The translations under genes and the position numbers were made by a program. DNA of 63,987 nucleotides, counting the filler, from Intoshia linei (lineage: Eukaryota; Animalia; Orthonectida): the NCBI GenBank assembly GCA_001642005.1. It is 9 parts of 9 records of this genome, joined end to end, with 100 filler letters (N's around TTAATTAATTAA, not from the genome) between each part and the next. Parts side by side here need not be neighbours in the genome. Positions count along the whole stretch, not along the records: positions 28,559 to 48,472 come from LWCA01000710.1; 8 more parts are not named here. One strand, written 5' to 3'. The notes below the pieces were generated by a model. That model made no database searches. It saw nothing but the letters and a program-made list of their open reading frames with translations, and was not told the DNA's origin. Position 1 is the stretch's first letter; every line of letters starts with the position of its first letter. Shown piece after piece: positions 26,581-48,572 of the stretch.

Positions 26581-28967
26581 AAATTTCATGTGTATAAAAA
26601 TCATTACATTGAAATGATATTGTGTAGTCCATTAAAAGAATGTTTTTTTATTTTTGATATTTTATTATTTGAGAATATTCTAAAATACACTTTAATATAA
26701 CACAATGCGTGTTAATTATGATTAGTTAATTTACAGATATTTAACACTTGTATCAATTTTCGAAATATCAGGAATTATCGTAATGTTATTATTAGAACAG
26801 TCTATTTTAATTTCACTACATTCACATCCCAGGGGACAATCTGAAAAGATTTATATTTTAACATTCTTTATTTGATTATACCGTGAATATTAATATCTAT
26901 ATTGCTGTAATCTTTAGACTTTTTGTCGAAACAGTTCACCGTATTGTTTGTACAATTACACCCAATTGGGCAAGCATCTAAATTCGTCACATTATTAATT
27001 GTGTCATCAGTTAAAATTTGTAAAAAATTTTTTAATTAATTGAGGCTTAGGCACCTTGATTAAACCGTAACCTACGTAATCATAAATGACACTTTTTTTT
27101 ACTCATGTTTTGATTTTATTTGGCATTGTTAAATGAAATTGTTGAAAATGTTTAGAAATCTGCCATAACCAGATACCATCAAAGGACGTTGCTTGATAAT
27201 TTTTGTACTGATCAACAGATGGATGATAAAAGTATCGACCTCATTATCAATTATCAATGCCAATGTAAACGTTTCATCCAATTGAATTAGAATGTAGAAA
27301 CATGTACAATATGCATCATTTATATTATTAAATTCAAAATTTCTGGAAATGAAAGGAAAACCAACAAAAGAAGTCAACCCACAAGAAGGGTGTCTTACTG
27401 TGTAAACGTTTCAATCTTTTAAAACAAATTTTTCAAAATAAGGGTTCAATAATCTGATAAAAACCGATTGAAATCAAAATAATATATGTACCAACATATA
27501 TAATGTATATTATAGAAATATGTACACATTTATAATTAAATTAATTAATTACCAAAGGAGGATAGAAAAAAAAGTATAAATATCAAAATCATTTAAAATT
27601 TAGATATAATTTAATAAATAAAGATGTAACTGTATTTTACATATAGCATATGCCACGTCATTTAATTAATATCATAAATTATATCGATAGTAAGTCATAT
27701 TAATATTATGAGATAATGTGTGACTACAATGTTGGGTCAAAATATTTCAATGTCTGTTGGTTCAATCAGAAATTTCGACAGATTATACTTTAATGTATAA
27801 TGTACGCATTCACATACCCTGTATAAATAATGTATAGTATTATATTTCATGCTCTAGAGACATTCGTTGATGATAAAATGCTAACAGTAAATTGAAAAAT
27901 TTTTCCTGCCGATAGTATTTCATTATTTATAGTTTCACGCATAATACATTACATGTACGACGTATAATGTAATGAAAATTTAATGACTGTGATGAAAACT
28001 ATTTAAATTACTATTGACGCAGATCGGTCGAAGGGATGACTGGTTCTTACAGTTTGATCATCATTTCTCGTTATTTATTTTTATATTCGACGCTGTTCCA
28101 GTCTTGTGATAACTGTAAATTTGGCTTTGTAATCTGCTTTAAAATTACTGGTCACAATACATTATTTATATGTAATATATTAATATTTTTAGTCATATTC
28201 TAAACAACGTAGGATTTAATTACAATAATAAATCAAAAACCAGTTGACGCGCCCGGATATTTTATAAATTAATTTTAAAAATAAAAAGAAATAGTTATAA
28301 TTAGAGTCGACATTTTATAGCACTAAAAATTCGATGATAATGCTAATTTTATTGACTTTATACAATTGTGACTCTGTAATTTTGTACAAAATTATAAATG
28401 CTAAAAAGTAGTTTTTAAGTCAATAAGTTACGTTGATAGTGCTATTTTTTTCATTTTANNNNNNNNNNNNNNNNNNNNNNNNNNNNNNNNNNNNNNNNNN
28501 NNTTAATTAATTAANNNNNNNNNNNNNNNNNNNNNNNNNNNNNNNNNNNNNNNNNNNNAATATGAAAAATATAATTTCAATAAAAAAAGTTAATTATGTT
28601 CAAAAAGTATCATACTTATAAAAAACATTGACCATTTTTTATAATAATTAATATTTTTATATTTTTCACATTGATTATTTAAAAATAGCTAAAAATAATT
28701 AGTAAAATACTTTGTTACAATTAGAAAAAAGAATGATTTAATTTACAGTGCGCGAAGCCTAGAACAGTCGTTACCAAACTTCTTTCACCATGAACTATTT
28801 GTCAAAGAAAAATGTGTGTGGACCGCATAATTTTTTAATTTTTAAAAAAATTGCTTTAATCTTGAAACAAGATTACCACAGTAGCACACACATGTTTCAC
28901 TGGACATGCATAAAATTTTTTGGGCACACCGGTTGAAAAACACTGCAATATATTAATTAATATTTAC

Positions 28968-29303
28968 ATTTAGCAATTTCACTAGAATCGACTGCATTCT
29001 ATATGAGGCAAACGGAATAACTTGCTCATTTAAATAATTTTTATAGATAATGTCACTCGTTCGCTTTAAAATGTCCATTACTGTTTCACGGCACATATTA
29101 TAACCATTATCTGATTCCATCATGTTAAACCTGTTTAAATTATATTAATATATAATATTTAATATTCAAATCTTATATACTATTTACCAGTCTTGATCAT
29201 TGTATTTTCCGCTGATGATTTCATGCACTATCATTGGTGTAGTTGACCCTGTCGTCCCCTTCCCTCGATCAGCTTTAGCTCTTGAAGTTGCTCCACGAGA
29301 CAT
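28968..29303 (-). CDS. C2orf81/DUF4639-like protein, first two exons (29303-29188, 29130-28968); remainder unresolved near the gap
   Basis: Spliced translation MSRGATSRAKADRGKG...VHEIISGKYNDQDWFNMMESDNG...IYKNYLNEQVIPFASY resembles the C2orf81 N-terminus (TRSKAEK...DIVPGRLSEAEW...FKVYLTQQCIPFT). 57-nt GT-AG intron with consistent phase. Not in the ORF track. Confidence 0.72.
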
Positions 29304-31468
29304 TTTGCAGAAGAATTTTCGTTACTAACTGTTTTGTTAATATACAATTATTTTTTGTTGTGTTTATATATAGTTACTAATACGGATTTATTACTTATTG
29401 TATAAATACATTTCATACTCATAAGAAAAAAAAGTCATCAAATGCAAGCAAATTGTGGGATAAATTGGAAACTGACATTTAACTTAAGTCTTAACGGGTG
29501 TAGAACTTACTTACAAGTTGTTATTAAAAACAATAGTATTGTATTAGAATTACCCAAATTCAAATCATTTTCAAAATGATAACAAAGTTATAAATTTCAG
29601 TTAATGTTAAATTTTAACAAATGTAAAAGCGTTAAGAAATCTTTAAAATCAATTCTACCTCATTTATTTTCGTTTTTAGTGAAAATATTAGTAACGATAG
29701 AGCAACTTTAGAGTAACTATCGTTAAACTCACTTCACTCTAGAATAAATATATTATGTTAATTCATTTTTTACATGAAATATAATGTTTGATATATAAGT
29801 TTCTAGTAGTACACTATTGAAGTTACTGCTTAATATCATTATCTCGTTACCAAATGTATTTATAACTTCATTTTTATGAGTTATACACCCGATTACGCTA
29901 CTATATTTATCACTGAAAAAGGATAATTTTTATAAAATTATAATAATTTTAAACGTTGATAAAATAAAAGGTAAACGAGGTAGAATTGAATTTAAAGTGC
30001 AAAGTGAACAACCAAACATGACGATCAACACAAGACTACTCAAAACATAACTAACACATTCGATGGTAACATTACATTAAATAAAGTTATATTTTAATTT
30101 TTATCTATGATTTAAATAATTTTTTTTTGTATTGTCATTTTTGATTAATACTCAACTTTTTAAGAGCTTACACTTAATTTTTAAAATTTTGTCACACCAC
30201 TAACATACATGTATTACACGTATATTAAAATTCGTTTTTAACTGGGAATATATGATTTTTTAGGTTTGAAATTTTTTCTCTAGATCAACTGGAATAAACT
30301 GCATCGGAAAAATTTTTTTATAATTTGTAGAACCATTAATTATTGATATTTTATTTAATAGTTAATTAAAAAAAATAAATAATTTGCTTTTTTGACCGTT
30401 ACTGTAATTTCGGAGATTTGGAATTTTTTCTCTCCATTAACTGGAAAAGTTAATTAACCTTGATTTTTTGTTAGATTTCATTGGCTTTTAGTTTTTTCAT
30501 TTGTGTTTTTGACTGAAGTTCAAATTTCTGAGAGATTTTACTTATTTTTCACTCTGGAAAAGAATCACTTAAAATTTGTGTTTTTTAAATTTTTGGGACA
30601 GATACTGAGCCATTCAGTACTATTGACTAGGTACTAGTAAAATTACACCAATGTATATGAGTCATATGATAGTATAACTGCTTACCAATCTGTTTTTAAA
30701 TAAAATTGTTTCATAATAAAGTGAGGATTAACCCTGTGTACTGGGAAATCTTCCTTTGTTGAACAAAATTTCAAATTTTGGAATGAATTCATTTTCAATC
30801 TTCCACTAACCGATAGTCGTAACGTAAATTACAATTTTACCGAATTAATTTAAATTTAAATGCGCAGATATATGAAAAAGCTGTCAGAATTTCATTATTT
30901 TGCATCAACGTGATTGTATTATGTGTTAGTTCAATTAAATTAATTACTAATTATAATTCCAAGTTAAATGTAACATTTTGTATTTACTTAATTCTAAATT
31001 ATCAGTTATAAATGTATATAAACGATAAATGTATTCATATTGTTATCTAATCCTTTAAATTCAACACATTAAACACAATAGTGACAATAGATTGTTTACT
31101 TTGTTCACTACCAACTAAAGAAAGTATTATTAACCTTTTATGATGGTCGATAAACAGATTCAAAAAATAGTTAAATTGTAATCTACATAAGTAAAAACAT
31201 GGCAACGAATTTAGAATTATATTTTAAAACTTTCAAAAAGTGTCAATAAAAGTGTTTATAATTGTTACGAAACATTAACGAGTACTAAACGTTCGAATTA
31301 AAATAACGTACGCGTTTACAACACGGAAAATACAATTTTACCGATAAACGTTTAAATTGAATACGGAACTTTTTTCAATTTAATTTCACCTTTATTTTAA
31401 ACATGTGCTAATTTCATTTTATTTCATTTACGTTTATTGTACATAATATTCATATAAATTTTAAAATT

Positions 31469-31515
31469 CAAAAAAATATAAAAGAAAAAGAAAATAGAAA
31501 AATATAAAAGAAAAA
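31469..31515 (+). promoter_or_regulatory. A-rich 5' leader of PABP copy 1 (candidate autoregulatory poly(A)-like element)
   Basis: aaaaaaatataaaagaaaaagaaaatagaaaaatataaaagaaaaa lies directly before the ATG. Confidence 0.6.
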
Positions 31516-33365
31516 ATGTCGAATCAATCAGCTTTCACTGAACAGAAGACCTTTAACCTTGAAGGTTGCAATACTTTATATGTCGGTGATTTGAGTTTGG
31601 ATGTGACAGAATCTGATTTGGAAGAATTGTTTAAACCGTTTGGTGATTTGTCGTCTGTTAGATTAGTCAGTCATGCTGATGGTACTAGAAGTGGAAATTA
31701 CGCTTATATAAACTTTATGGATAAAAATTGCGGTAATTTTTTAATTTATTACGTAATAATTATTGATAGCTCTGCAAGCAATGCGCAATTTGAATTATAA
31801 CACTCTTAATGAAAAAAGTATGAGAATCATGTGGTCTTTTCGAGATCCTTCCATACGAAAAAATGGTGTCGGTAACATTTTCATTAAAAATTTGGATAAA
31901 ATTGTCGATCAAAAAACATTATTTCAGACATTTTCTCATTTTGGACCAATCATGTCTTGCAAGGTAATTTTTTATTTTAATTTTAATAAAATTACATTTT
32001 AGGTTGTATGCGACGAACATGGTGTATCGAAAGGTTACGCTTTTGTACATTTCAGCAATTTGGACCATGCTAAAACAGCAATGAGTCGATTAAATGGAAC
32101 CAGATTGACCAAGGATGCTAAACCCGTTGAAGTCATGGAATTTATACCTAAGTCTAAACGAAACACTAGAGGATTTAATAATTTGTACGTCAAAAACTTT
32201 CCCGTTAGTTGGGAACAGGAAGATTTAAGTAAAGCATTTTCTGCCTATGGTGAGATTTTTTCATGTAAAATTTGCATTAGTAACAGTATGGATTCCAAAA
32301 AATTTGGTTTCGTTTGTTACAAAGACCCTACTCATGCTCAAAAAGCAATGAAAGAAATGCACGATAAAGATATTAAATCGAGCGATAATGAAGCTTTTAA
32401 ACTTTACGTTGTAGCTGCATTAAAAAAAAGTGAACGCGCTAGGCAATTGGCTGATCAAAAAGCGGTTAAACTGTCAAACATTAGAAATAATACGAGAGAT
32501 GTTAATTTATACATTAAATATTTGGATGATAAGGTCGACGATGTAGAATTAAAACAGCAATTTAGTGTATTTGGAGAAATTACTTCGGCTAAAGTTATGC
32601 GACATGAAAATGGCACTTCCAAAGGTTTCGGGTTTGTGTGTTTCGCTGAAGAAAGCGCGGCAACTAGTGCTTTAACAGAAATGAAAGGAAAAGAATTTTT
32701 TGGTAAACCTCTATATGTGTCTCTAGCTCAAAAAAAAGACGAACGAAAAACAGAACTGTCTCTTAGATCGCGACAATTTTCGAGACATATGATGGCAATG
32801 CACAACAATTATTTTACCGGTGCTATTCCTATGAATCAATACGGAATGTTCCAGCAATTGAGAATGCATGCAGATATGCAATTCCAAATGCCAAATAAAA
32901 TGAATTATCCAAAACCTGCAGAAATGCAAAATTATAATGGACAGTGGACAAATATGCATAGAAACGTTATAACTAATAATTTACTACCAAATCAGAATAA
33001 TAAAAAGGTTAGAATGTTCCAAAATTATTCCCAGTATCCTAATCAAAATGGATTACACGATATGAACATTTATTTTCAAAAGAATAGTGAGAAAATGCAC
33101 AATGACTATTTACATTCTATTCCCCAAAAAAAGAATAGCATTTTATATACATTTATTAGTGAATTTGTGAAAACCTATTATAATTATCAAGAGAACGAAG
33201 TTATTTCAGCTTTGGTTACTAGTATTCTTAGGGATTCTACTAATGTAGATAAGGAAAACTTTTTTAATTTGTCTAATTTGACTTTGAAAAATATGGTATT
33301 TATTTTAATTTTTATGTTTATATTATTTTTAGATTGATTCACACATAAATAGTAATCATATGTAA
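31516..33365 (+). CDS. PABPC: Cytoplasmic poly(A)-binding protein, copy 1 (exons 31516-31732, 31770-31963, 32003-33295, 33333-33365)
   Basis: Four RRMs ([74 protein letters not shown]), an N/Q/M-rich linker and a degenerate MLLE-like C-terminus. Introns of 37, 39 and 37 nt keep frame. Confidence 0.95.
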
Positions 33366-34042
33366 TCGAATTTATTAAATATATATTTATTTCGTTTTCA
33401 AATTTCAAATTTTACGTCAGCTAATTTGAGTAAATATTAATCCTTTACTTATGTAAAAGTGAATATCTAGTACCGTTTATTTATAAAATCGACATAGGGC
33501 CTATGTTATAATTTAAAAAAAACCATTTTCTAATACATTTTTTTACCAGGGTGTGCTTATATCGATCAAATAATTTTTTCATTTTCAGAATTTAAGTGCT
33601 TCAGGGTGGAAAACCCAATTTGCCCTTTTTAAAAATAAAATAACTCATAAATTTAATAAAATATACATTTTGGAACGCGTTTTAAAATGATTAACATTGT
33701 CTTAATATTATTATTTTATATAGTTTCAGCCTCAGAAACGCATATCTTTATGGTCAAAATCAGAAATGACCCTTTCTTTTAAAAATAAAATAAAGTGTGG
33801 AATTGAAAATATAATTAAAATACTTAAAACCTTCATAAAATTATCTTTTAATACAACCAAAAATTTGAAATTATAATTTCAAAACGTTACATTTTCACTA
33901 GTTGTACCAAGCATTTTATTTTGTTCTAGAGAATAGATAGAACCAACAAATCTGAAAATTATTTAAATTGAAGGGCGCAAAGACGAATATTTTTTTAAAA
34001 ATAAACCAATAATCGGAAAATTTAATTGATTGTATGTATTAG

Positions 34043-34283
34043 CAGAGGTGTCAGACTCAATTTTCTTGGCAAGCAAAATATGAAAAAAAAATTATTACGC
34101 AGGCCGCACAAAAAAATCTTTACTCAAAAAATTATGTTAAAACTAACAGATTTAATTAATTCATAAAATGAAGTATGATGGAATAAGTAAAAACTGTAAA
34201 TTAAGAAATGTGTAAAAAATTGTTATAAAAAATAAAAATATATATTATAACGCAGGCCGCACATTCCATAATTGACACCCCTG
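34043..34283 (+). mobile_element. hAT-type MITE, family A
   Basis: cagaggtgtcagactcaatt...attgacacccctg with flanks gtattag/gtattgag. Confidence 0.85.
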
Positions 34284-35710
34284 GTATTGAGCGAGAATCC
34301 ATGTGATTAATTTTTAAAAATTAATCTAAAAAATTTTTCTGATTCTGTGGAATCGTCGATTCGCTAGTTCCAAGGTGTTTCAAATTTTTTTTGGAGTGAA
34401 CCCGTAATTTTTGTATGGATATCTAATTTCTGAAAAAATTATCATTATATTCAATACGAATGAAAGATAATATTCCAACTACGGTGCAACCTTTTTAAGT
34501 AAAAACGATAAATGTTTGTAAATTTGTGCGTGATAGACTCTTTGATAAATAACAATAGGAAGGTTGTAAAATTAAATGTTAGTGAAATATTACAATTGCA
34601 TCATTTTGTAAATACATTGTATATGTCAAATCTATCAATGAAATATGTATCAATTTTAAATTAGACTAATTTATTTAATTGACATTGTATTGAAAAAATA
34701 TAATTTTAATTTGAACAGTTTTCCAATTAACGAGTCACATTATAAATTGTATTCAAATTTTGAATTAACCAGGGTTGACTTAAAGAGGTAGAACTGTACA
34801 AAGGTTATGCGTGGACAATTTTTTTAATTATTATTCAAATTACAAGTCCAAATTATATTTACGTTAAAATTAAATTTTTTGTGTTGGTACAGATTGTTCA
34901 TTAGGTATCACATCTCTTTTAAATTATGATAATTTAAAATACGGAGAAGGTAGATTATTTTAAAATGCGATACCCTAATGTACATGGTTAAAATATCGAA
35001 AATGATAACATTTACGTTGTGTACTAATGGATCAAAAGAAAAAATTAAATGAATGCTCTGTACCGACGATCAACGAAAAAATTTGATGGGTGGTCGGGTA
35101 ACAACTTAAAAACGTCGGTTCGTTTGCTGTGATTCATCCGATCATTAAACCAATATATCTAAATAAAGAACGAAAAATTTTTAGTCATTATAGGATGTTA
35201 ACGTGTAGGAGAACGCCTTAATCGACATTATTAATATATTAAAAAATTAAAAATTTCATAGTGTGAAATAGGATTAGAATGCTAGGTTAAAACATATTTT
35301 GCCTTGGAAATTTTTTTAATATTTTTGATTTCAGGAAACTTATTTGATTACAAACACATTATATTGAGATGAAAAATAAAGATTGTAACTCCTACAAAAT
35401 ATGGAATGTGGCTGCATTTTCCTATGTCTGATATGAATTGAAAAATTAAATCAAAAGACTGAAACAAAGTCAATTTACAATGTAAATTTTACACCAATAA
35501 TTCAAACCATGTGTACTTATCTGTGACGATAAAAAAGTAAATTGATTGCATTTAAAAACAATTATCTTAAGGCTCAAAAAAAACAAGTTAATTGTCTAGA
35601 ATTAAATGATGAAAAGTAATCAATCATGCATAAATTTTAAAACCAATTTTCATAAAATTTTTTAGCTCGGATTGTATTTTCGTAAAAAAACGTTGTAAAT
35701 AGTTTTTTTG

Positions 35711-35751
35711 ATAAAAGATAAAAAAAAGTAAAAAGACGTAAAAACAAAAAA
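35711..35751 (+). promoter_or_regulatory. A-rich 5' leader of PABP copy 2
   Basis: ataaaagataaaaaaaagtaaaaagacgtaaaaacaaaaaa lies directly before the ATG. Confidence 0.6.
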
Positions 35752-39687
<3,936 letters not shown>

Positions 39688-39898
39688 CCAGTATAAACTA
39701 AATTAAATTAATAATTTAAAAATAGATTTAAATTTTAATTGTCATTGTAGGTTAAAAGATGATTGAAAAGAATATAAATATATAGTTTTATAATTTTATA
39801 TTGTTAAAGTTTTTGTTAATTAAACGAATTAAAAAATTAGTTTTGAAAAATTGGATGGAATGAATATATTTTAAAATTTATAAACGTAACATTTAAAT

Positions 39899-40512
39899 TT
39901 AAATAGATGGACACCATTTGAACAGGTCATATTGAGATTCGATTTTCTTAATATTTAATCCTACTTTGAATTCACATGTAATGTTGTTTCTTTCAATGGT
40001 TTGATTTTGATAATTGCTAAATTTGACTTGACGATAATTTTTCTCGTGTTTGCGTCGTTTCCTATTGAAAATTTTTCTATTCCACAAATTTTCCGGTCTT
40101 TTTTTCTAAAAATGTATAATTTGGCTTTTTTTAAAGTTACCTGATGCAACTTGTAGTACAATCCACACGCATTGCAATTTAAATAATTATTTTCCATTCG
40201 ACGCCACATTGAAGTGGTTGTAGCGTTACAATTGGCACACACATCTTTAGATTTGACATTTGGTTTAATGTCCACAGGTGGGTTCAGATTCTCTAGGGGG
40301 GAATCGGCCTTTTCAAATAGACTAAAAATATCTGACATTGAACAGTCATTCGTGTAATCTAATTGACTATCCATATAATTGACTGTTATCAAATTTTGAT
40401 CCATTTGATTCAACTTTGTAAAACTTTCAGTTTGTGTCGCAACAGACAATTGGACCGTTTTAAAAACATTAACATTATTGGTACCAGAGAACATGGGATC
40501 ATAGTGGTACAT
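39899..40512 (-). CDS. GATA transcription factor, single zinc finger (exons ~40512-40141 and 40105-39899)
   Basis: CANC-x17-CNAC finger ([20 protein letters not shown]). A 35-nt intron 40106-40140 joins it to the basic tail [19 protein letters not shown]. Start codon uncertain. Confidence 0.9.
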
Positions 40513-40828
40513 TTTATCAACAAATTTAACAAGTTTCTGGCAAAATTTAATGAAATTGCGATACGCTATTATTAATGGTGTCAACACTGCATTAATTTTT
40601 TAATTTAATGATTTATTCGGAATCATCAAACGCTCAATTTACGTGATTCATACAATGGTAAATTACTTTGGAACGCAAAATAAAAAGATGCATACTAGAG
40701 ATTGGACCATACGTGATATATCCAACGATACTGCTTAGTTGAAAAAGACGGTATCGTGAGATGTGATGTCTTGAAATTTACAACGCACAATTAATTTATA
40801 ATTTGGTTTAATGAAAAATTGTATAATA

Positions 40829-41229
40829 TTAATCGTTTTCAAAACTTTTGTAAACATTTTTATATTTGGATGAGCAATTTCGAAATTTATTGTGCCTTTT
40901 AATGCAATCGGTTTCCTTGTCGTTTGGGTTGTACATGTCGGAAAAAAAGCATTCGAATGATTTTCTATACAAGTAACCGCATGGACCTCCCAGTATACTT
41001 CCTATGCAGGCACAGTTCCAATTTATACTACCGTCTGGTCTTCTCGCGCCACCGTCAATTTCGTTAAATTTTTGAGATGTTTCTAATTTAAATTTAGATT
41101 TTTCTTCCCATTGACTGTCTGTCAGTACAAACACTGTATCTTTATCTTAAATTTTTAGTTTTTAGGTTTATGGGGTATTTTATTACCAGATGAAACTTTT
41201 ATTTGCTTTTTATTTTGAATCATTGACAT
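40829..41229 (-). CDS. CHCHD4: Mitochondrial intermembrane space oxidoreductase MIA40/CHCHD4 (exons 41229-41187, 41145-40829)
   Basis: DKDTVFVLT, G..PDGSINWNCACIG, GPC-x9-C and C-x9-C twin CX9C motifs; 41-nt intron keeps phase. Confidence 0.9.
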
Positions 41230-41557
41230 TGATTATCATTCGATTTAAATAAAGTATGGTTTGTTTTAATTTTTATAAATAAAGTAGGGTGTCACTGTCA
41301 CACATGTTTGAGAAACAAGAATATTCAGTACGCAATTTCTTCAGTTGTACGATATTCATATGTTGTATCCAGAATCGAATCTATCGTATCACGAGACTCA
41401 TCTTCTAGGTAGACAAAATGGGGAAAATTTTAACTATCAAATCTAGACTATGTTTCAGTTTCATTCTTTTTATTTTTAGAAATGAAGAGTTAAATTAAAT
41501 ATCCAAATTTTTTTAAAAGTAAATTTTTAATAATTAAAAGTGTTTATTAATAAAATT

Positions 41558-44500
41558 TTATAAGTCTCTTTGTTGTATCCAAACATTATCCAATTTATCC
41601 TGAAGTAAAGAAAATTTTTCAGAGATAAAGTCATCAAAAAAAATATTCAATCCAATAAGTGAATTCTAAAAAATTTTATAAAATTTTGAATACAAAAAGC
41701 TTACAGAATTATCTATAACCAGATTAATAAAATCTACAAATTTAACAAAATCTTGATGCTGTTCAACAGATGGCAAAAATTTTTTAAATTTAGCTGCATT
41801 TATTTTTTTGTGACTACAAAGAATGTTGAAATAATGAAAATCAAGTCTATGGGGCATGGTAGGTGAAAATTTTACATTTTGAGACATAATTTCATGTGAA
41901 TATTTCCTGTCGAATAAAATTTGAACTGTTAAATTGACTAAAAAGTTGATAAGTGTAATGCTAGTAAAAGATTCAGAATCTTTGTCATCTTTAGTCCAAA
42001 TTTCGTTGTCTTGATTAAAAACTTCAAAATATGACATTTTTGTTAAATTTATACTCAAATTTTTCAACATTGTGTAAAATTTTTTCAATTCCTTGTCCAT
42101 CAGTATACTATCCTCATCATAATACTTTCGAATGTAGGTTTCAACAAAAATTGCAATGTTTTTTCTTACTTTATCCTTTGTAATTTTATGACGACTTAGC
42201 TTTATCGGTACAGTTTCTAGTTTTGTCCAAATTCCGGTTTCGAAAAAATTTCCCATTTCGGTATAATATTCTTTAGTGTATTTATAAATTATCCTTGTTG
42301 TGTTTTCCAAGTCTAAATTTAAAATTTTAACGAGTATGCTTGAATCTTTGAGTAGCATTCTGTAAATCTGACATTCTATGGGAATGTACGAAAGAAATGC
42401 GTCAAAGTATAATGCTATCGGATGGTGAGAACATAGTGTACATTTTTGGATTATCCAAAGAGGTTCCAGAGCAAATGTATTGTGTGTCATTACCGTAAAT
42501 AACAGATGGTATATAAATTGCGAATGGCGGATACCGATTTTAGCCATTAACCATTTTGAGTATGTTTTAGTCGATTCAGTCGCATCTAGAGGCTCCATTT
42601 GAACGTAAATGTTTTGTTTTTTTATCATTTCAGTTTTTTTTATAAATTCTTCATATTTTATGTCTTGAGACACTATTGAATGTGACGTATCCAATTCATT
42701 TTCTCGGCATTCAGTTACACATTTTAGAGATATGTGTAATAAGGTTAGTCCTTTACTAGCCATTTCGTAAACTGATTCGTCGTCTTCAAAATCAATGTTT
42801 TTACTCTCATTGGATTTTAAAAAATAAAAATATCCGAAAAACAAATTGTCGTAATGTCCCAAATCTTTCATGTGTTTTACATTCGCTTGGTACAAATATC
42901 CACTCTAAATGTATTATTAAAAATTGTTATTCAAATTTAATCAATTTACGAAAGGAAAAAAATATTGGATAAAAATGTTTTTTAAAAAAGTTTTGAAAAA
43001 GTGGGGTTTTCCCTTAAAGGTAGGTAAAATAGAAATTTTTCAAAAAAGTTTTGAAAAAGTGGGGTTTTTTCTTAAAGGTAGGTAAAATAGAAATTTTTCA
43101 AAAAAGTTTTGGAAAAGTGGGGTTTTCCCTAAAGGGTAGGTAAAATTGAATTTTTCAAAAAAGTTTTGGAAAAAGATGGATTTTTCCTTTAAGGGTAGGT
43201 AAAATTAAATTTTTCAAAAACCTTCCTCTTAATTCAACCCCAAAATAAAAATACAATTTTACTAACTCAATGGGAAAAATCCCATTTTTCCAATATATTT
43301 TTGAAAAAAACATTTTTAACCAAATCTTATGAGATTTAAGACAAATTTAAAATAATTAAACCCCTTTAATTTTGTCATAGATCTTTTATATTTTATGTTT
43401 CCTTTGGGCCCAAAAAAATAAAAATTTTGAAGAAAGGGTTCGTACACTATTTGAATCGGAACCCACTGGATTAAGAGGTTTTTTCAAATAAGATTTGGTA
43501 AAATTGGATTTTTCTCATAAGGTTTGAAATGGAATTTTTTATTTTATAAAAATTACGTTTTCGACTGTAAATACCCATATAATTATAATTTACCTCTATG
43601 GCTTTATTGATTCTTTCAATTAAATCGACATCCTTTGTTTTAAAATCATCGGGTAAATTTTTAATAGATTTTATATTAAGAGTTCCAGGGAATTTTATCA
43701 GCTAAATATTAGAATAAAGAAAAATATATAATATATCAGTAATTCTCAAACTTTTTTGATAAAGCCGCCAAAAATAATATTTTTATTGAAAAGAAACTTA
43801 TTTTTGTATAATAAAAATATTGAAGTCTAATTAAAAATCTAGAATAAGTTTACCGTTAACTGATAATTATTTATATCAAGTCTCAAGTTTATACTAATTT
43901 ATATATTTTTAATTATATTAAAAGTCCTATACGTCTAATAAATGGTTGTAGTTGCATGTAAATACTTGAGACGTTGAAACAATAAATACTCTTCATTTTA
44001 TTAAATTTAAAAAAAAATCAATTTTGCGCCTCATTTTAAGAATCACTGATACGCAAATTTCTATTTTTTACTTCAAATAAAAAGTAGCTATCTAAATTCC
44101 ACATTTCGGTGATGCTTTTGAGTTTCACAGACATGTAATAATTTTGAGTCAAGTAATTTTCATATTCTTCTATAACATTATTAGAACCTCTGGAATATTT
44201 AAACCAATTTATGATACAATTGAAAGCATTTCGAATCCCTAGACGTGTAAATAATAAAAATATATTTAAATTAACCTCCATTGCTTGATAAGGTAGAATT
44301 TATGTTGTCAATTATATTACTACACAAATTAACAATTTTAATCTGTTCGGGGTTAAAAAAATTGAAATAATCATGATTGTGTCTTAGTCCACTAGACAAA
44401 TAAGGTAAAAGTTGATGATATATATTGTTGACATCAACTTCTCTAACAGTGGATAAATAATGAGAATTTTCGTTATTTGGTATAGATTCAGCATTATATT

Positions 44501-46973
44501 TAAGCCAAAAATATTTATTCTTGGTTAACCATCCGGATCGATTATTACAACGGTAACTTACCTTCAATTTTGGTATAGATATAATAAAATATTCTATAAA
44601 CGTTTTCATATCGTTGGTATTTGTAAACTTGACGCATTCAAATTTTCCTATAGGTATATCTTTGAAAATCATTACAAAACTGTTATTTTTCTTGGTCGGG
44701 CAAGCACTTTCCATATTTGTGTAGTTTGTGCGTGTTTTACTGCCTAATTTGATAATATAAAAAATAACTGATCAAATTACCTACAATTGACAAGTAAATG
44801 CTTTTAAATAGTTTTTTTTCAACGGGAATAGAGAATATAGCATTTACTATATATTCTTGACAGTCATCTTTTAATTTTGTATTTATACAATCAAATAAAC
44901 CATATTCAGAAATTTGTTTTTTTGAAGAAATACTGTTAAATTGTCTACTTTTAAAATTATCAGATACTAAAGATGAGTCGTCCAATCTCATTTCAGAACT
45001 AGTACGATATTTTAATGATGAGGGAAAATGTATACATTTGAAAGCAATCTTTTTCAATTCATTTTGTAAACTGGAAAAAATTTCTGGAAGTATACTGTAA
45101 TTTTCAATATTACCTTGAGGAAAATTTAAAATGTTTGGTATATTTATTATGTTAAAATCATGAGTGTTTTCCAATTTTCTTGGAATTGTTGTATTGATTG
45201 TTAATACTGCAACATCTACCCATCTGCACAGATTAGATGGCCATCTGATGCTGGGATTTGTTCGGCCTATATTTTCAGGCCCATGAATTCTCAAAAATGC
45301 AGTTTGAAGTACATATGTAATTGGTCCATTTTTTAATCTTCGATTATACTCCTCATCTAGGTATCTGATGGGTAAGTCTACATTTACTACTTCGTAAACT
45401 TTCCAAGGATTTTTTTGTTCTTCTTCTTCCAATTGGCCAGAGTTTGTTACACTACTGTTTATTGGAATAAGTCTAAATCTAACTGCATAATATACTCCTT
45501 CTTCGACTATTATTTTGTAAAATAAATGGGTATTGTATATTTGATTGCAGTATGAAGAAGGTCTAGCACGAATTCCTCCAACAAAAGAGTCCATGCTAAA
45601 TATTTTATTGAAAATATGTGTTAACTTTTAAAATGTTATTTTATTTCAATGTTTCAATGTCTAACCATTTATTTAAAAAACTGAGAGGCCTTGAATTTTA
45701 AAAAACAGAAATTCTAGGATTATTTTTGCATGAAAGAATTTTATCACAAGTTTAAATACCAGATTTACATTATAACTGTCAAAAACGCAAATTATCATTT
45801 TATTTACATTACATTACGAACTACATTATGAGACTTACATTGTGAGATTCAATATCTGAGTGTATGCAATAAAGACTGATAAATAATTAATATTTGACTG
45901 GTAAATAATTTATATTTGACTGATTGATAAATTGATAATTGACAACAAAATTAATTTTAAAATCTCAAATTTATAAATACACCTTGCTCATTTAACATTA
46001 ATGTTTAGCATAGCATAATAAATCAAAATGAAATTTAAAATTAATTAGTTAATTAATTTAATACACTCATTCCAATATATACAGTAGTATGTATTAGGTT
46101 ATGAACAATTGACTAATTACAAAATGTGAATGCATTAAAAATTTTTAAATTAAAATACTGAAGAGGCCGTTTAAGCATATATTCCTTGATATCCGTTATT
46201 TTGACGAGTTTATGAGCTTTAAAAATATCAGTGAATTCGTTCATAGTTTCCAAATTGTAATAAGGCGATATTTCTCCAGTAAAGCATAGTAAATCAAAAT
46301 CGCTCTGATAGAAACTATCACTAAACCTTAATTCTATAGCTCGATAACTGGGGTAAGCATCTTCACCGTAATCTGAAATAAAGTGGTATTTTGAATTGAT
46401 GTTGATATAAATAATTAAAAGTTAACCTGGAAAATTAAAATGTCTTATTTGGATTTCATGGAGTCGGTTTTTAGCAAAAAAAGGGTGTTTATTTAGTAAT
46501 TCACATTTTCCAGTCATTTTAGACGTTCCAAATGCCCTGACACCATTGGGAATTTCAAATTTTATATTATTAGATAGCAACAAAGGGCGTACATTATCTA
46601 ATTTGTACGATTTTTTCAACCATTTATCGTTTAATAATGAATTGGAAACCCTCTAAACGTTGTTTAAAATTCTAATTTAATATATTTAAGTACTTTTAAT
46701 TCATCTACTTGCAATTTGCATACTCTGAAGTAATCATTTGGTCCAACCAAAGAACGCAATTGTTGGTAAGCTAAATTATTGTTCTCTACATTCTCTTCAA
46801 ATCGACTCAACAGTTTTAAAGATTCATTCAAGTTAACTAGATTTCGTGTATTTTTTATGTTTTCTATTTATATAAATTATGTTTATTTATATTTCACAAA
46901 ATTGTGTAAAAATGGAAAATTAAAAGTATTATACGTAAGGGTTACCATTTACGCTAGTATTAAAAGTTTGCAT
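41558..46973 (-). CDS. Allene oxide synthase (catalase-like)-PLAT-lipoxygenase fusion protein, predicted catalytically inactive; exons 46973-46946, 46863-46694, 46652-46427, 46372-46159, 45595-44781, 44743-44276, 44238-44072, 43701-43594, 42904-41705, 41665-41558
   Basis: All nine introns are GT-AG with consistent phase; total 3504 nt, 1167 aa. AOS-like: HPFFAKNRLHEIQIRHFNF, RAIELRFSDS, SGQLEEEEQKNPW, YLDEEYNRRLKNGPITYVLQ, DFNIINIP. PLAT-like: IYLSIVGSKTRTNY. LOX-like: WNLDSYF, LPDDF, WLMAKIGIRHSQFIYH, HPI, YY-x7-DKEL, FSPTMP, QDKL. Confidence 0.87.
42983..43220. repeat. Tandem repeat, about 4 x 58-59 bp, in AOS-LOX intron 8
   Basis: Unit caaaaaagttttgaaaaagtggggttttcccttaaaggtaggtaaaatagaaatttt. 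Confidence 0.9.
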
Positions 46974-48572
46974 ATTTTCACTTATTAACAAAAAACATAA
47001 ACTAAGTATGTAACATATTTTATGTTACAATATTTGAATCAGTTTCTCGAATGATTTTCCTAATTAATGCATATATTTAATGTTTACACATGTTGTATTT
47101 AATATAAATTATTGTCTACAACTAAAAAACTAAATATGGGTCAATGATCTACATTATTATATCATTTTAATGAATCTTAAAATACTTTTTTAATTGTTGT
47201 TATATTCAATGCTATTATTGTCAAATCTATTTATACTTTTATTTTAATATTGTAATAATATATCAAAATATTGCTTTTATAATATAGTCCTGCCATTTTC
47301 ACAGTAAATGTACGTTTTGATATACGTTCAAAAAAATAATTATAAATGTATGATTTTTATATATCAGGAATCGACAACCAGTGACCCTAAAGGATAATTT
47401 TGGTGGCCTTTTGAGTAAATATGTAAATTATTTATTTTAAAATTTTTAAACACTTTTCTACCATAATTAGCTCATTCTAATCATTTTAACTCTAAATTTT
47501 CAAATCGCCCTGGATATTATTTGTTGAATATACTACTAGAATCGTTTATCTTCAGTTAAAATTGAAATTTATCATGTGTAAATTTTCACAAACGGGGCCC
47601 GTATAATTTTTTGATCAAAAAAAGTGACACACGAGATGCAAAAGGTTGCCGACCCCTGTATATATTAACATGCACACTAAGGTGTCTCTAAAATAATTAA
47701 AAATTATATTTTTGAACATCCTTAAGTATATTAGTTATCAGTATAAAAAAATGATATTTCCAAAATATTAATCTATTTCAACCAATATTGAAGATTAAGA
47801 TAAATATTTAAAAGCCTGGGCATTTACGTAAAACATAAGATTTACTATGAGAATTTATAATAAGTATACAATGTAAGTTATTGGTAAAGTACCCGCTTGT
47901 AATGATATAGCAGAGCGTGCGTTACACAAATATAGCATTACTAAAAAGATAACATCTATCAAATCAGAAATTCAAATCATTATATCCCTAAACTAGTAAT
48001 CCATTCTTATATAATATGCTTTTTTTGTCTGTGTGTGTGTTATCGTTTATTTCAATAACTACCAGCGACAGCTAGAGGGACCGCGATTGTCATTTGAACA
48101 CAGTAGAAAATATAAATAAAACTGAATATGCTTTTTTAATATTTTCATTTATGTAAATTGATAAAATGTTTGGAGTACATGTTTTGTGATTGTATTAAAT
48201 TTTTTATGTTTATAATTATGTTTATGTTATTTATGTTTATGAAAATTTTAAAAATAAATAAATATCAACAATAACAAATAAATTACTTTATACAAATAAA
48301 CAATTATCATTTTCAACCAATTTATTGTTATTGTTAATATTCATAAAATAGTATGATAATGTAAAAAAATCTTTACAATAAAAATTATGTTATTACTAAG
48401 TTTTAATTAATTTTATTCATAAAATAAACAACAATAAGAATGGAATAAGTGTACAAATAATTTTAAAATTGTNNNNNNNNNNNNNNNNNNNNNNNNNNNN
48501 NNNNNNNNNNNNNNNNTTAATTAATTAANNNNNNNNNNNNNNNNNNNNNNNNNNNNNNNNNNNNNNNNNNNN

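Follow-up and report, generated by a model that had tools for sequence, protein, structure and literature searches.

A predicted AOS-PLAT-LOX fusion protein with degenerate heme and iron sites in the orthonectid Intoshia linei: a candidate double pseudoenzyme

The window analysed here is a stretch of 63,987 nucleotides, filler included, from the orthonectid Intoshia linei (assembly GCA_001642005.1), in which nine parts of nine genome records are joined end to end. Residue and coordinate work was confined to positions 28,559-48,472, which come from record LWCA01000710.1 and are AT-rich (GC content of about 26-27%). In this part, the minus strand at 41558-46973 carries a predicted gene for a protein with the order allene oxide synthase (AOS), PLAT and lipoxygenase (LOX), in which eight of the nine ligand positions across the AOS and LOX domains are changed. 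As judged from its sequence, the predicted protein is a new and degenerate member of a known fusion family, in a parasite whose proteins evolve fast. The frame around these changes is otherwise intact, correctly spliced and conserved in structure, and we consider it somewhat better than an even chance (probability about 0.55) that the gene encodes a double pseudoenzyme, in which the AOS-PLAT-LOX scaffold has been maintained for a non-catalytic role.

The gene prediction is already public, yet unnamed and without a Pfam domain. A HMMER search of the largest AOS exon against 1.84 billion representative sequences returned, with 100% identity, the 1128-amino acid protein OAF67249.1 (locus A3Q56_05025), which is annotated as a 'hypothetical protein' of Intoshia linei. 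This protein was mapped back onto the stretch and the splice sites were then re-derived (Table 1); the searches used single exons and OAF67249.1. The predicted frame comprises ten exons and nine GT-AG introns, which are all consistent in phase, and has no internal stops. The original prediction had proposed nine phase-consistent GT-AG introns and one stop-free protein of 1167 amino acids; its introns, phases and open frame were recovered, but the length was corrected to 1158 codons plus the stop with the re-derived boundaries. Stops occur on the minus strand at a frequency of 0.084 per codon, and the open stretches of the two largest exons (412 and 296 codons) have chance probabilities of 2e-16 and 5e-12. 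The ORFs (open reading frames) are predicted to form a single intact protein-coding gene.

The public model and that of the original prediction differ at two exons. OAF67249.1 lacks exon 8 (43701-43594) and reads 44071-42905 as one 1168-nt intron. In a family profile, which was built from 18 fusion homologues and used to search 151 pieces, exon 8 occupies the colinear slot at positions 520-567, the motif after PLAT; its score was equalled in 1 of 2000 shuffles, and in that slot in 0 of 2000. On this sequence evidence, the original prediction, which includes the exon, is better than the public model. At the 5' end, either candidate exon 1 (46946-46973 or 47893-47938) splices with GT-AG borders in phase 1 onto position 46836, and with the public first exon the gene extends to 47938.

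Sequence comparison and structure modelling firmly support a predicted catalase-like AOS domain homologous to that of coral. The whole OAF67249.1 matched coral AOS (1u5u) with a phmmer E of 7e-24, and its AOS exons matched this chain in colinear order. Three colinear AOS exons scored 128.7, 43.4 and 16.6 bits against the family profile, with no gaps between the AOS pieces, while the exon that holds the distal-His position gave only spurious leucine-rich-repeat matches when searched by phmmer against the PDB. The AOS domain of the AlphaFold model has a predicted local distance difference test (pLDDT) value of about 90. When the model was compared with 1u5u using VIA-align, the two agreed at the fold level (Z 36.8, root-mean-square deviation 2.6 over 323 residues, 23% identity).

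For the PLAT and LOX domains, Pfam searches at E<=1 returned no family at all, AOS, PLAT and LOX included, with single exons or with the whole OAF67249.1, whereas relatives from Lingula, Branchiostoma and Tubulanus scored 81-218 bits in the same search with Lipoxygenase (PF00305). Although the Pfam models find nothing, the family profile of fusion homologues matches both the AOS and the LOX exons. The 400-amino acid LOX exon scored 36.3 bits against it (9e-14 as a single piece, about 1e-11 corrected for 151 pieces); its best match among PDB sequences reached only E 0.25, with a bacterial LOX. When the LOX exon or residues 480-1128 of OAF67249.1 served as query against protein collections, only the protein itself was returned, and the length window and word index of these searches mean that they say little about fragments or distant kin. 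At the structural level, Foldseek ranked the coral fusion 3dy5 first for the whole model (E 6e-32; VIA Z 35.3 over 801 residues), followed by 8R-, 5-, 12- and 15-LOX structures. The 8R-LOX structures 3fg1 and 4qwt were matched with E 3e-13, and the values for 3fg1, 4qwt and 5-LOX span E 1e-11 to 1e-13. In the ESM Atlas, LOX clusters make up 27 of the 30 feature neighbours of residues 694-1128 (score 0.94).

The PLAT region scored only 0.5 bits over family profile positions 399-507, and the PLAT exon had no phmmer match in the PDB. In the AlphaFold model, which depends on an alignment of homologues, this region forms seven strands over residues 456-561 with a pLDDT of about 85 and is aligned within 3dy5. 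Exon 7 alone gave no significant sequence match in Pfam and profile searches. Exon 5 runs from the AOS domain into the first part of PLAT, and exon 6 likewise spans the junction of PLAT and the LOX domain, so the evidence for a fusion goes beyond splicing alone. With all pieces colinear on one strand, both junctions within exons and nine phase-consistent introns, the claim of an AOS-PLAT-LOX fusion homologue was upheld, and the order AOS-PLAT-LOX in one polypeptide is predicted from both sequence and model.

The ligand columns were assigned by four routes, namely phmmer alignment to the coral chains, the family profile hidden Markov model (HMM), hmmalign with a ligand-complete profile, and MAFFT, using the published list of coral AOS heme residues (PMC5617202). 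The profile, MAFFT and hmmalign place coral Thr66-His67 at Glu96-Ile97, with the Ile97 codon at 46553-46551; the H-to-I replacement that had been proposed near 46552 was thus reproduced, with phmmer as well as with these three methods. Coral Asn137 corresponds to Phe169 (46283-46281), within an otherwise kept D-L-x-x-x-T-G-E motif. This column is variable among family relatives, and Asn137 has been reported to be non-essential for the chemistry of the catalase-related AOS (cAOS) (PMC5617202). At the proximal side, coral Arg349 corresponds to Phe383 and Tyr353, the heme ligand, to Gln387 by phmmer extension, profile HMM and hmmalign. The N-to-F, R-to-F and Y-to-Q replacements of the original prediction therefore hold across the alignments, apart from MAFFT, which alone offers Tyr406 as the proximal Tyr. 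This candidate was rejected: it needs a 19-residue insertion, and the three other methods give Gln387. Gln387 is preferred because of the high HMM posterior across residues 383-387 and the unbroken helix that the AlphaFold model predicts over residues 378-398. From the heme-propionate arginines of cAOS (R64, R102 and R360; PMC5617202), R102 is kept as Arg133, R64 aligns to Lys94, and R360 aligns to Ala394 by ungapped extension only.

In the LOX domain, the iron ligands from the H-x4-H-x4-H helix are its second and third His, according to the coral numbering in the phmmer alignment to the coral chains. These two residues are replaced by Val831 (42493-42491) and Thr836 (42478-42476), and the first, non-ligand His is kept as His826. 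The proposed loss of both helix ligands was recovered with the profile, MAFFT and hmmalign. For the second ligand helix, the original prediction had read H-to-R and N-to-H replacements, but this shifted alignment is less parsimonious than an ungapped one anchored on the conserved Phe1024. In the latter, the third ligand His is probably retained as His1030 (41896-41894), with the Asn replaced by Ser1034; hmmalign left this segment unaligned, and the placement is therefore of moderate certainty. The W-L-M-A-K and E-P motifs of the LOX core are kept as well. The protein stops at R-N-x, just where the usual LOX tail would follow, so that about 22 C-terminal residues are absent, including the terminal Ile whose carboxylate is an iron ligand. 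This early end, also part of the original prediction, was seen both with MAFFT and with VIA-align, in which model residue 1128 pairs with residue 1044 of the 1066 in 3dy5, and no extra 3' exon with the tail motif (P-Y-x-Y-L or I-P-N-S-I) is present in the six frames of 28559-48472. The broader claim that both active sites are dismantled stands in part: most heme and iron ligands are replaced in both domains, but the third LOX His is probably kept.

The closest known system is the Plexaura homomalla AOS-8R-LOX fusion (PDB 3DY5; AOS 1U5U; LOX 2FNQ/3FG1), which has the same order of AOS, PLAT/C2-like and LOX domains. Identity to this best structural match of the whole model is only about 15-23%, and the Intoshia LOX domain lies below Pfam detection. 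Compared to the coral protein, Tyr353, Arg349, His67, Thr66 and Asn137 are all replaced in the AOS domain, and in the LOX domain two of the three iron His are replaced, the Asn has become Ser, and about 22 C-terminal residues with the Ile ligand are missing. The Intoshia linker between AOS and PLAT is approximately 50 amino acids longer than in coral and other homologues; at residues 397-450 of OAF67249.1 (about 45036-44875, minus strand) it is Ser/Lys-rich with pLDDT < 50. LOX-free catalase-related hemoproteins, such as the Mycobacterium avium 33-kDa protein (3E4W) and bacterial or cyanobacterial cAOS, have a small catalase core of the same fold (VIA Z 24.2) and are numerous in the phmmer match list of the AOS exon. 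They stand alone and keep the set of heme ligands, whereas in the Intoshia protein the core is fused to PLAT-LOX.

The nearest sequences found are bilaterian predictions named 'allene oxide synthase-lipoxygenase protein-like', which belong to the same metazoan clade and share 27-33% identity over the AOS exon. They include proteins from Lingula anatina (XP_013388118.1), Tubulanus polymorphus (XP_074652621.1 and XP_074651699.1), Branchiostoma (XP_066267927.1 and XP_035693140.1) and Helobdella robusta (XP_009019320.1), and no experimental characterisation of them was found in the searches made. Several likewise deviate at ligand positions. The amphioxus proteins XP_066267927.1 and XP_035693140.1 have Asp in place of the distal His and Gln in place of the Tyr, with Leu (in XP_066267927.1) or Tyr, Asn and Thr at the LOX positions, and they end in Pro. 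In a second amphioxus group, the Tyr is replaced by Val and LOX ligand positions hold Arg and Ala, and Lingula XP_013388118.1 has Arg, Arg and Tyr at the three LOX His positions. One amphioxus form lacks ligands in both domains, and its copies from two species share one 90% identity cluster, which hints that ligand-less forms can be maintained. Unlike the Intoshia protein, all of these predictions match Pfam Lipoxygenase and PLAT and have a full-length C-terminus, and in none of them are all AOS residues lost together with truncation of the LOX tail. The case is less singular than the original prediction had implied, given the amphioxus and Lingula proteins and the rapid divergence of Intoshia proteins. 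Our literature searches found no paper with both 'Intoshia' and 'lipoxygenase' and no description of a ligand-less AOS-LOX.

In a tree of AOS domains, OAF67249.1 falls inside the metazoan clade with a Shimodaira-Hasegawa-like approximate likelihood ratio test (SH-aLRT) value of 98, where it groups loosely with nemertean and leech sequences. The protein has a deviant composition and an end branch of 2.1, compared to a median of 0.67. From the family-conserved columns, 59% are kept in the AOS domain and 43% in the LOX domain, and 41-57% are therefore changed, so that the ligand loss is set in heavy divergence. Structural core residues that are kept include W811, K815, E840, P855 and many Gly, Pro and Trp of the AOS domain.

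The explanation that we consider best is one in which the gene would have descended vertically from the AOS-PLAT-LOX fusion gene of cnidarians, amphioxus, brachiopods, nemerteans and annelids, because in the tree its protein lies within the metazoan clade, close to sequences from a nemertean and a leech. The protein keeps the three-domain architecture and many residues of the structural core. In its AOS domain, the heme Tyr is replaced by Gln, the partner Arg by Phe, the distal His by Ile and the Asn by Phe; in its LOX domain, Val and Thr stand for two of the three iron His and Ser for the Asn, and the tail with its terminal carboxylate is missing. Such a protein should bind neither heme via Tyr nor catalytic iron in the canonical manner and would therefore most likely be a double pseudoenzyme, kept for a role that depends on the fold but not on catalysis. 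Purifying selection is inferred from the intactness of the frame only. The least speculative guess for the role would be membrane or lipid binding via PLAT and the two fatty-acid channels; scaffold, lipid-binding and decoy functions, including a decoy for host oxylipins, are pure speculation.

Several observations weigh against this explanation. The LOX domain has moderate pLDDT with long stretches < 50, and since AOS-LOX homologues made up the alignment on which the AlphaFold model was built, the predicted fold counts only in part as independent evidence. Intoshia proteins are very fast-evolving in general, which lessens the surprise, and with 41-57% of the conserved columns changed some of the ligand loss could be part of this general divergence. 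No orthologue in another orthonectid was found in homologue searches of protein collections. In addition, the gene could be under relaxed selection and heading to loss, if a parasite whose genome is extremely reduced no longer had a use for the AOS-LOX pathway and the active sites and C-terminus went before the frame was broken. Such decay would fit the very long end branch (2.1 versus a median of 0.67), the lack of any remaining Pfam match, the shortened C-terminus and the absence of transcript-derived proteins among the protein-collection matches, as well as introns of 370-689 nt, one of them with a tandem repeat, which are unusually long for a species with a median of 57 bp (PMC6543705). 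We nevertheless regard it as unlikely: a long time is needed to replace eight of nine ligands and roughly half the conserved columns, and meanwhile neutral drift in DNA of 26% GC would bring stops (at 0.084 per codon) and frameshifts, whereas all nine introns keep GT-AG borders and phase and the structural core (W811, K815, E840, P855 and the AOS Gly, Pro and Trp residues) is kept.

The metal site may also have been rewired, as His1030 is kept and His820, His826 and His834 lie near the lost ligands. The protein would then still be an enzyme with non-canonical chemistry or ligation, for example iron bound by His1030 with His826 or His834, or it would carry out a cofactor-independent lipid reaction. 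Besides the probable third LOX His and the three other His on the ligand helix, the W-L-M-A-K and E-P motifs lining the LOX active-site helices would agree with this, Asn137 is dispensable for cAOS chemistry (PMC5617202), and partial ligand sets are common among the relatives, so the family tolerates variation. On the other hand, Val and Thr stand exactly at the two helix ligands in the profile alignments, the terminal carboxylate has no counterpart, and the AOS His, Thr, Arg and Tyr have all given way to residues unable to ligate or hydrogen-bond alike, with the propionate arginines R64 and R360 aligned to Lys94 and Ala394 (the latter by ungapped extension). We therefore consider retained catalysis improbable, and less likely than decay. 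By far the least probable, in our estimate, is an artefact of the gene model, with several separate genes or fragments or a different transcript (a hidden intron in exon 5 or another 3' end). The disagreement of the two models on the first exon and exon 8, and the lack of significant matches for exon 7 and the PLAT part alone, would be in keeping with it, but the domain junctions lie within single exons (5 and 6), all pieces are on one strand and colinear with the family profile with a gap-free AOS domain, the short introns agree with the 57-bp median of the genome (PMC6543705), and an AATAAA directly follows the stop.

Table 1. Positions of the predicted exons and associated features of the Intoshia linei AOS-PLAT-LOX gene, counted along the whole stretch.
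Feature	Position	Strand	Observations
Candidate exon 1 (original prediction)	46946..46973	-	Met + 8 amino acids, phase 1 end
Alternative exon 1 (public model)	47893..47938	-	Phase 1 end, GT donor; ~1 kb upstream
Exon 2, N-terminal helical arm of AOS	46694..46836	-	Exact match to OAF67249.1 residues 16-63
Exon 3, AOS distal-heme segment	46427..46652	-	Family profile positions 62-108, 16.6 bits
Exon 4, AOS beta-barrel segment	46159..46372	-	phmmer, 1u5u residues 106-176, E 0.003; family profile 43.4 bits
Exon 5, remaining AOS with proximal helix, ~55-amino acid low-confidence linker and first PLAT strands	44781..45595	-	phmmer, 1u5u residues 177-348, E 2e-12; family profile 128.7 bits
Exon 6, remaining PLAT-like beta-sandwich and start of LOX helical domain	44276..44743	-	Covered by the 3dy5 alignment
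Exon 7, LOX N-terminal helices	44072..44238	-	Exact match to OAF67249.1 residues 639-693
Exon 8, LOX F-P...L-P-D-D motif	43594..43701	-	36 amino acids, phase 0 at both ends, GT-AG
Exon 9, LOX catalytic core	41705..42904	-	400 amino acids; family profile positions 711-976, 36.3 bits, 9e-14
Exon 10, final LOX helix and stop codon (41560-41558)	41558..41665	-	MAFFT block
AATAAA hexamer, likely polyadenylation signal	41543..41548	-	10 nt 3' of the stop; read directly
58-bp tandem repeat, 4.2 copies, 89% matches	42978..43220	.	Tandem Repeats Finder; in the exon 8-9 intron

The introns measure 109, 41, 54, 563, 37, 37, 370, 689 and 39 nt in 5' to 3' order, and the majority agree with the median of 57 bp in I. 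linei (PMC6543705). The 58-bp tandem repeat at 42978-43220 sits in the 689-nt intron, and tandem repeats of 14 and 22 bp are found at 45809-45943 within the 563-nt intron; these long, repeat-carrying introns contrast with the introns of 37-54 nt at other places in the gene.

Upstream in coordinates, two tandem multi-exon paralogues on the plus strand (31516-33337 and 35752-39687) contain several RRM domains (PF00076, E 4e-33 and 1e-32); they are poly(A)-binding protein-like, and their N-terminal and middle exons are mutually similar. On the minus strand, a GATA zinc-finger ORF (PF00320, E 2e-11) lies at 39961-40587. It adjoins a small ORF at 40829-41134 with C-A-C and twin C-x9-C motifs, which resembles MIA40/CHCHD4 by pattern only, with no Pfam match, and which is the next gene, starting ~420 nt downstream of the AOS-LOX gene.

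This analysis provides a name and a domain architecture for a public 'hypothetical protein' that is unrecognised by any Pfam model, and corrects its gene model by the addition of a 36-amino acid exon. If the double pseudoenzyme explanation is true, the gene would represent a rare two-enzyme fusion in which both active sites are degenerate and a frame of ~1150 codons has been kept, in an animal genome that ranks among the most reduced, and it would point to a fold-dependent, non-catalytic role of the AOS-LOX scaffold. A wider and more doubtful proposal is that ligand-less AOS-LOX-like proteins are a class of non-catalytic binders of lipids or oxylipins, recurrent and maintained in bilaterians (Intoshia, amphioxus and Lingula). 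In this case, the orthonectid protein might capture polyunsaturated fatty acids or oxylipins of the host, by binding or sequestration, instead of making them, the nemertean host phylum having several AOS-LOX genes. The ligand loss in amphioxus and Lingula suggests that automatic 'AOS-LOX-like' names overstate enzymatic capacity, and non-catalytic members of the AOS-LOX family may be common.

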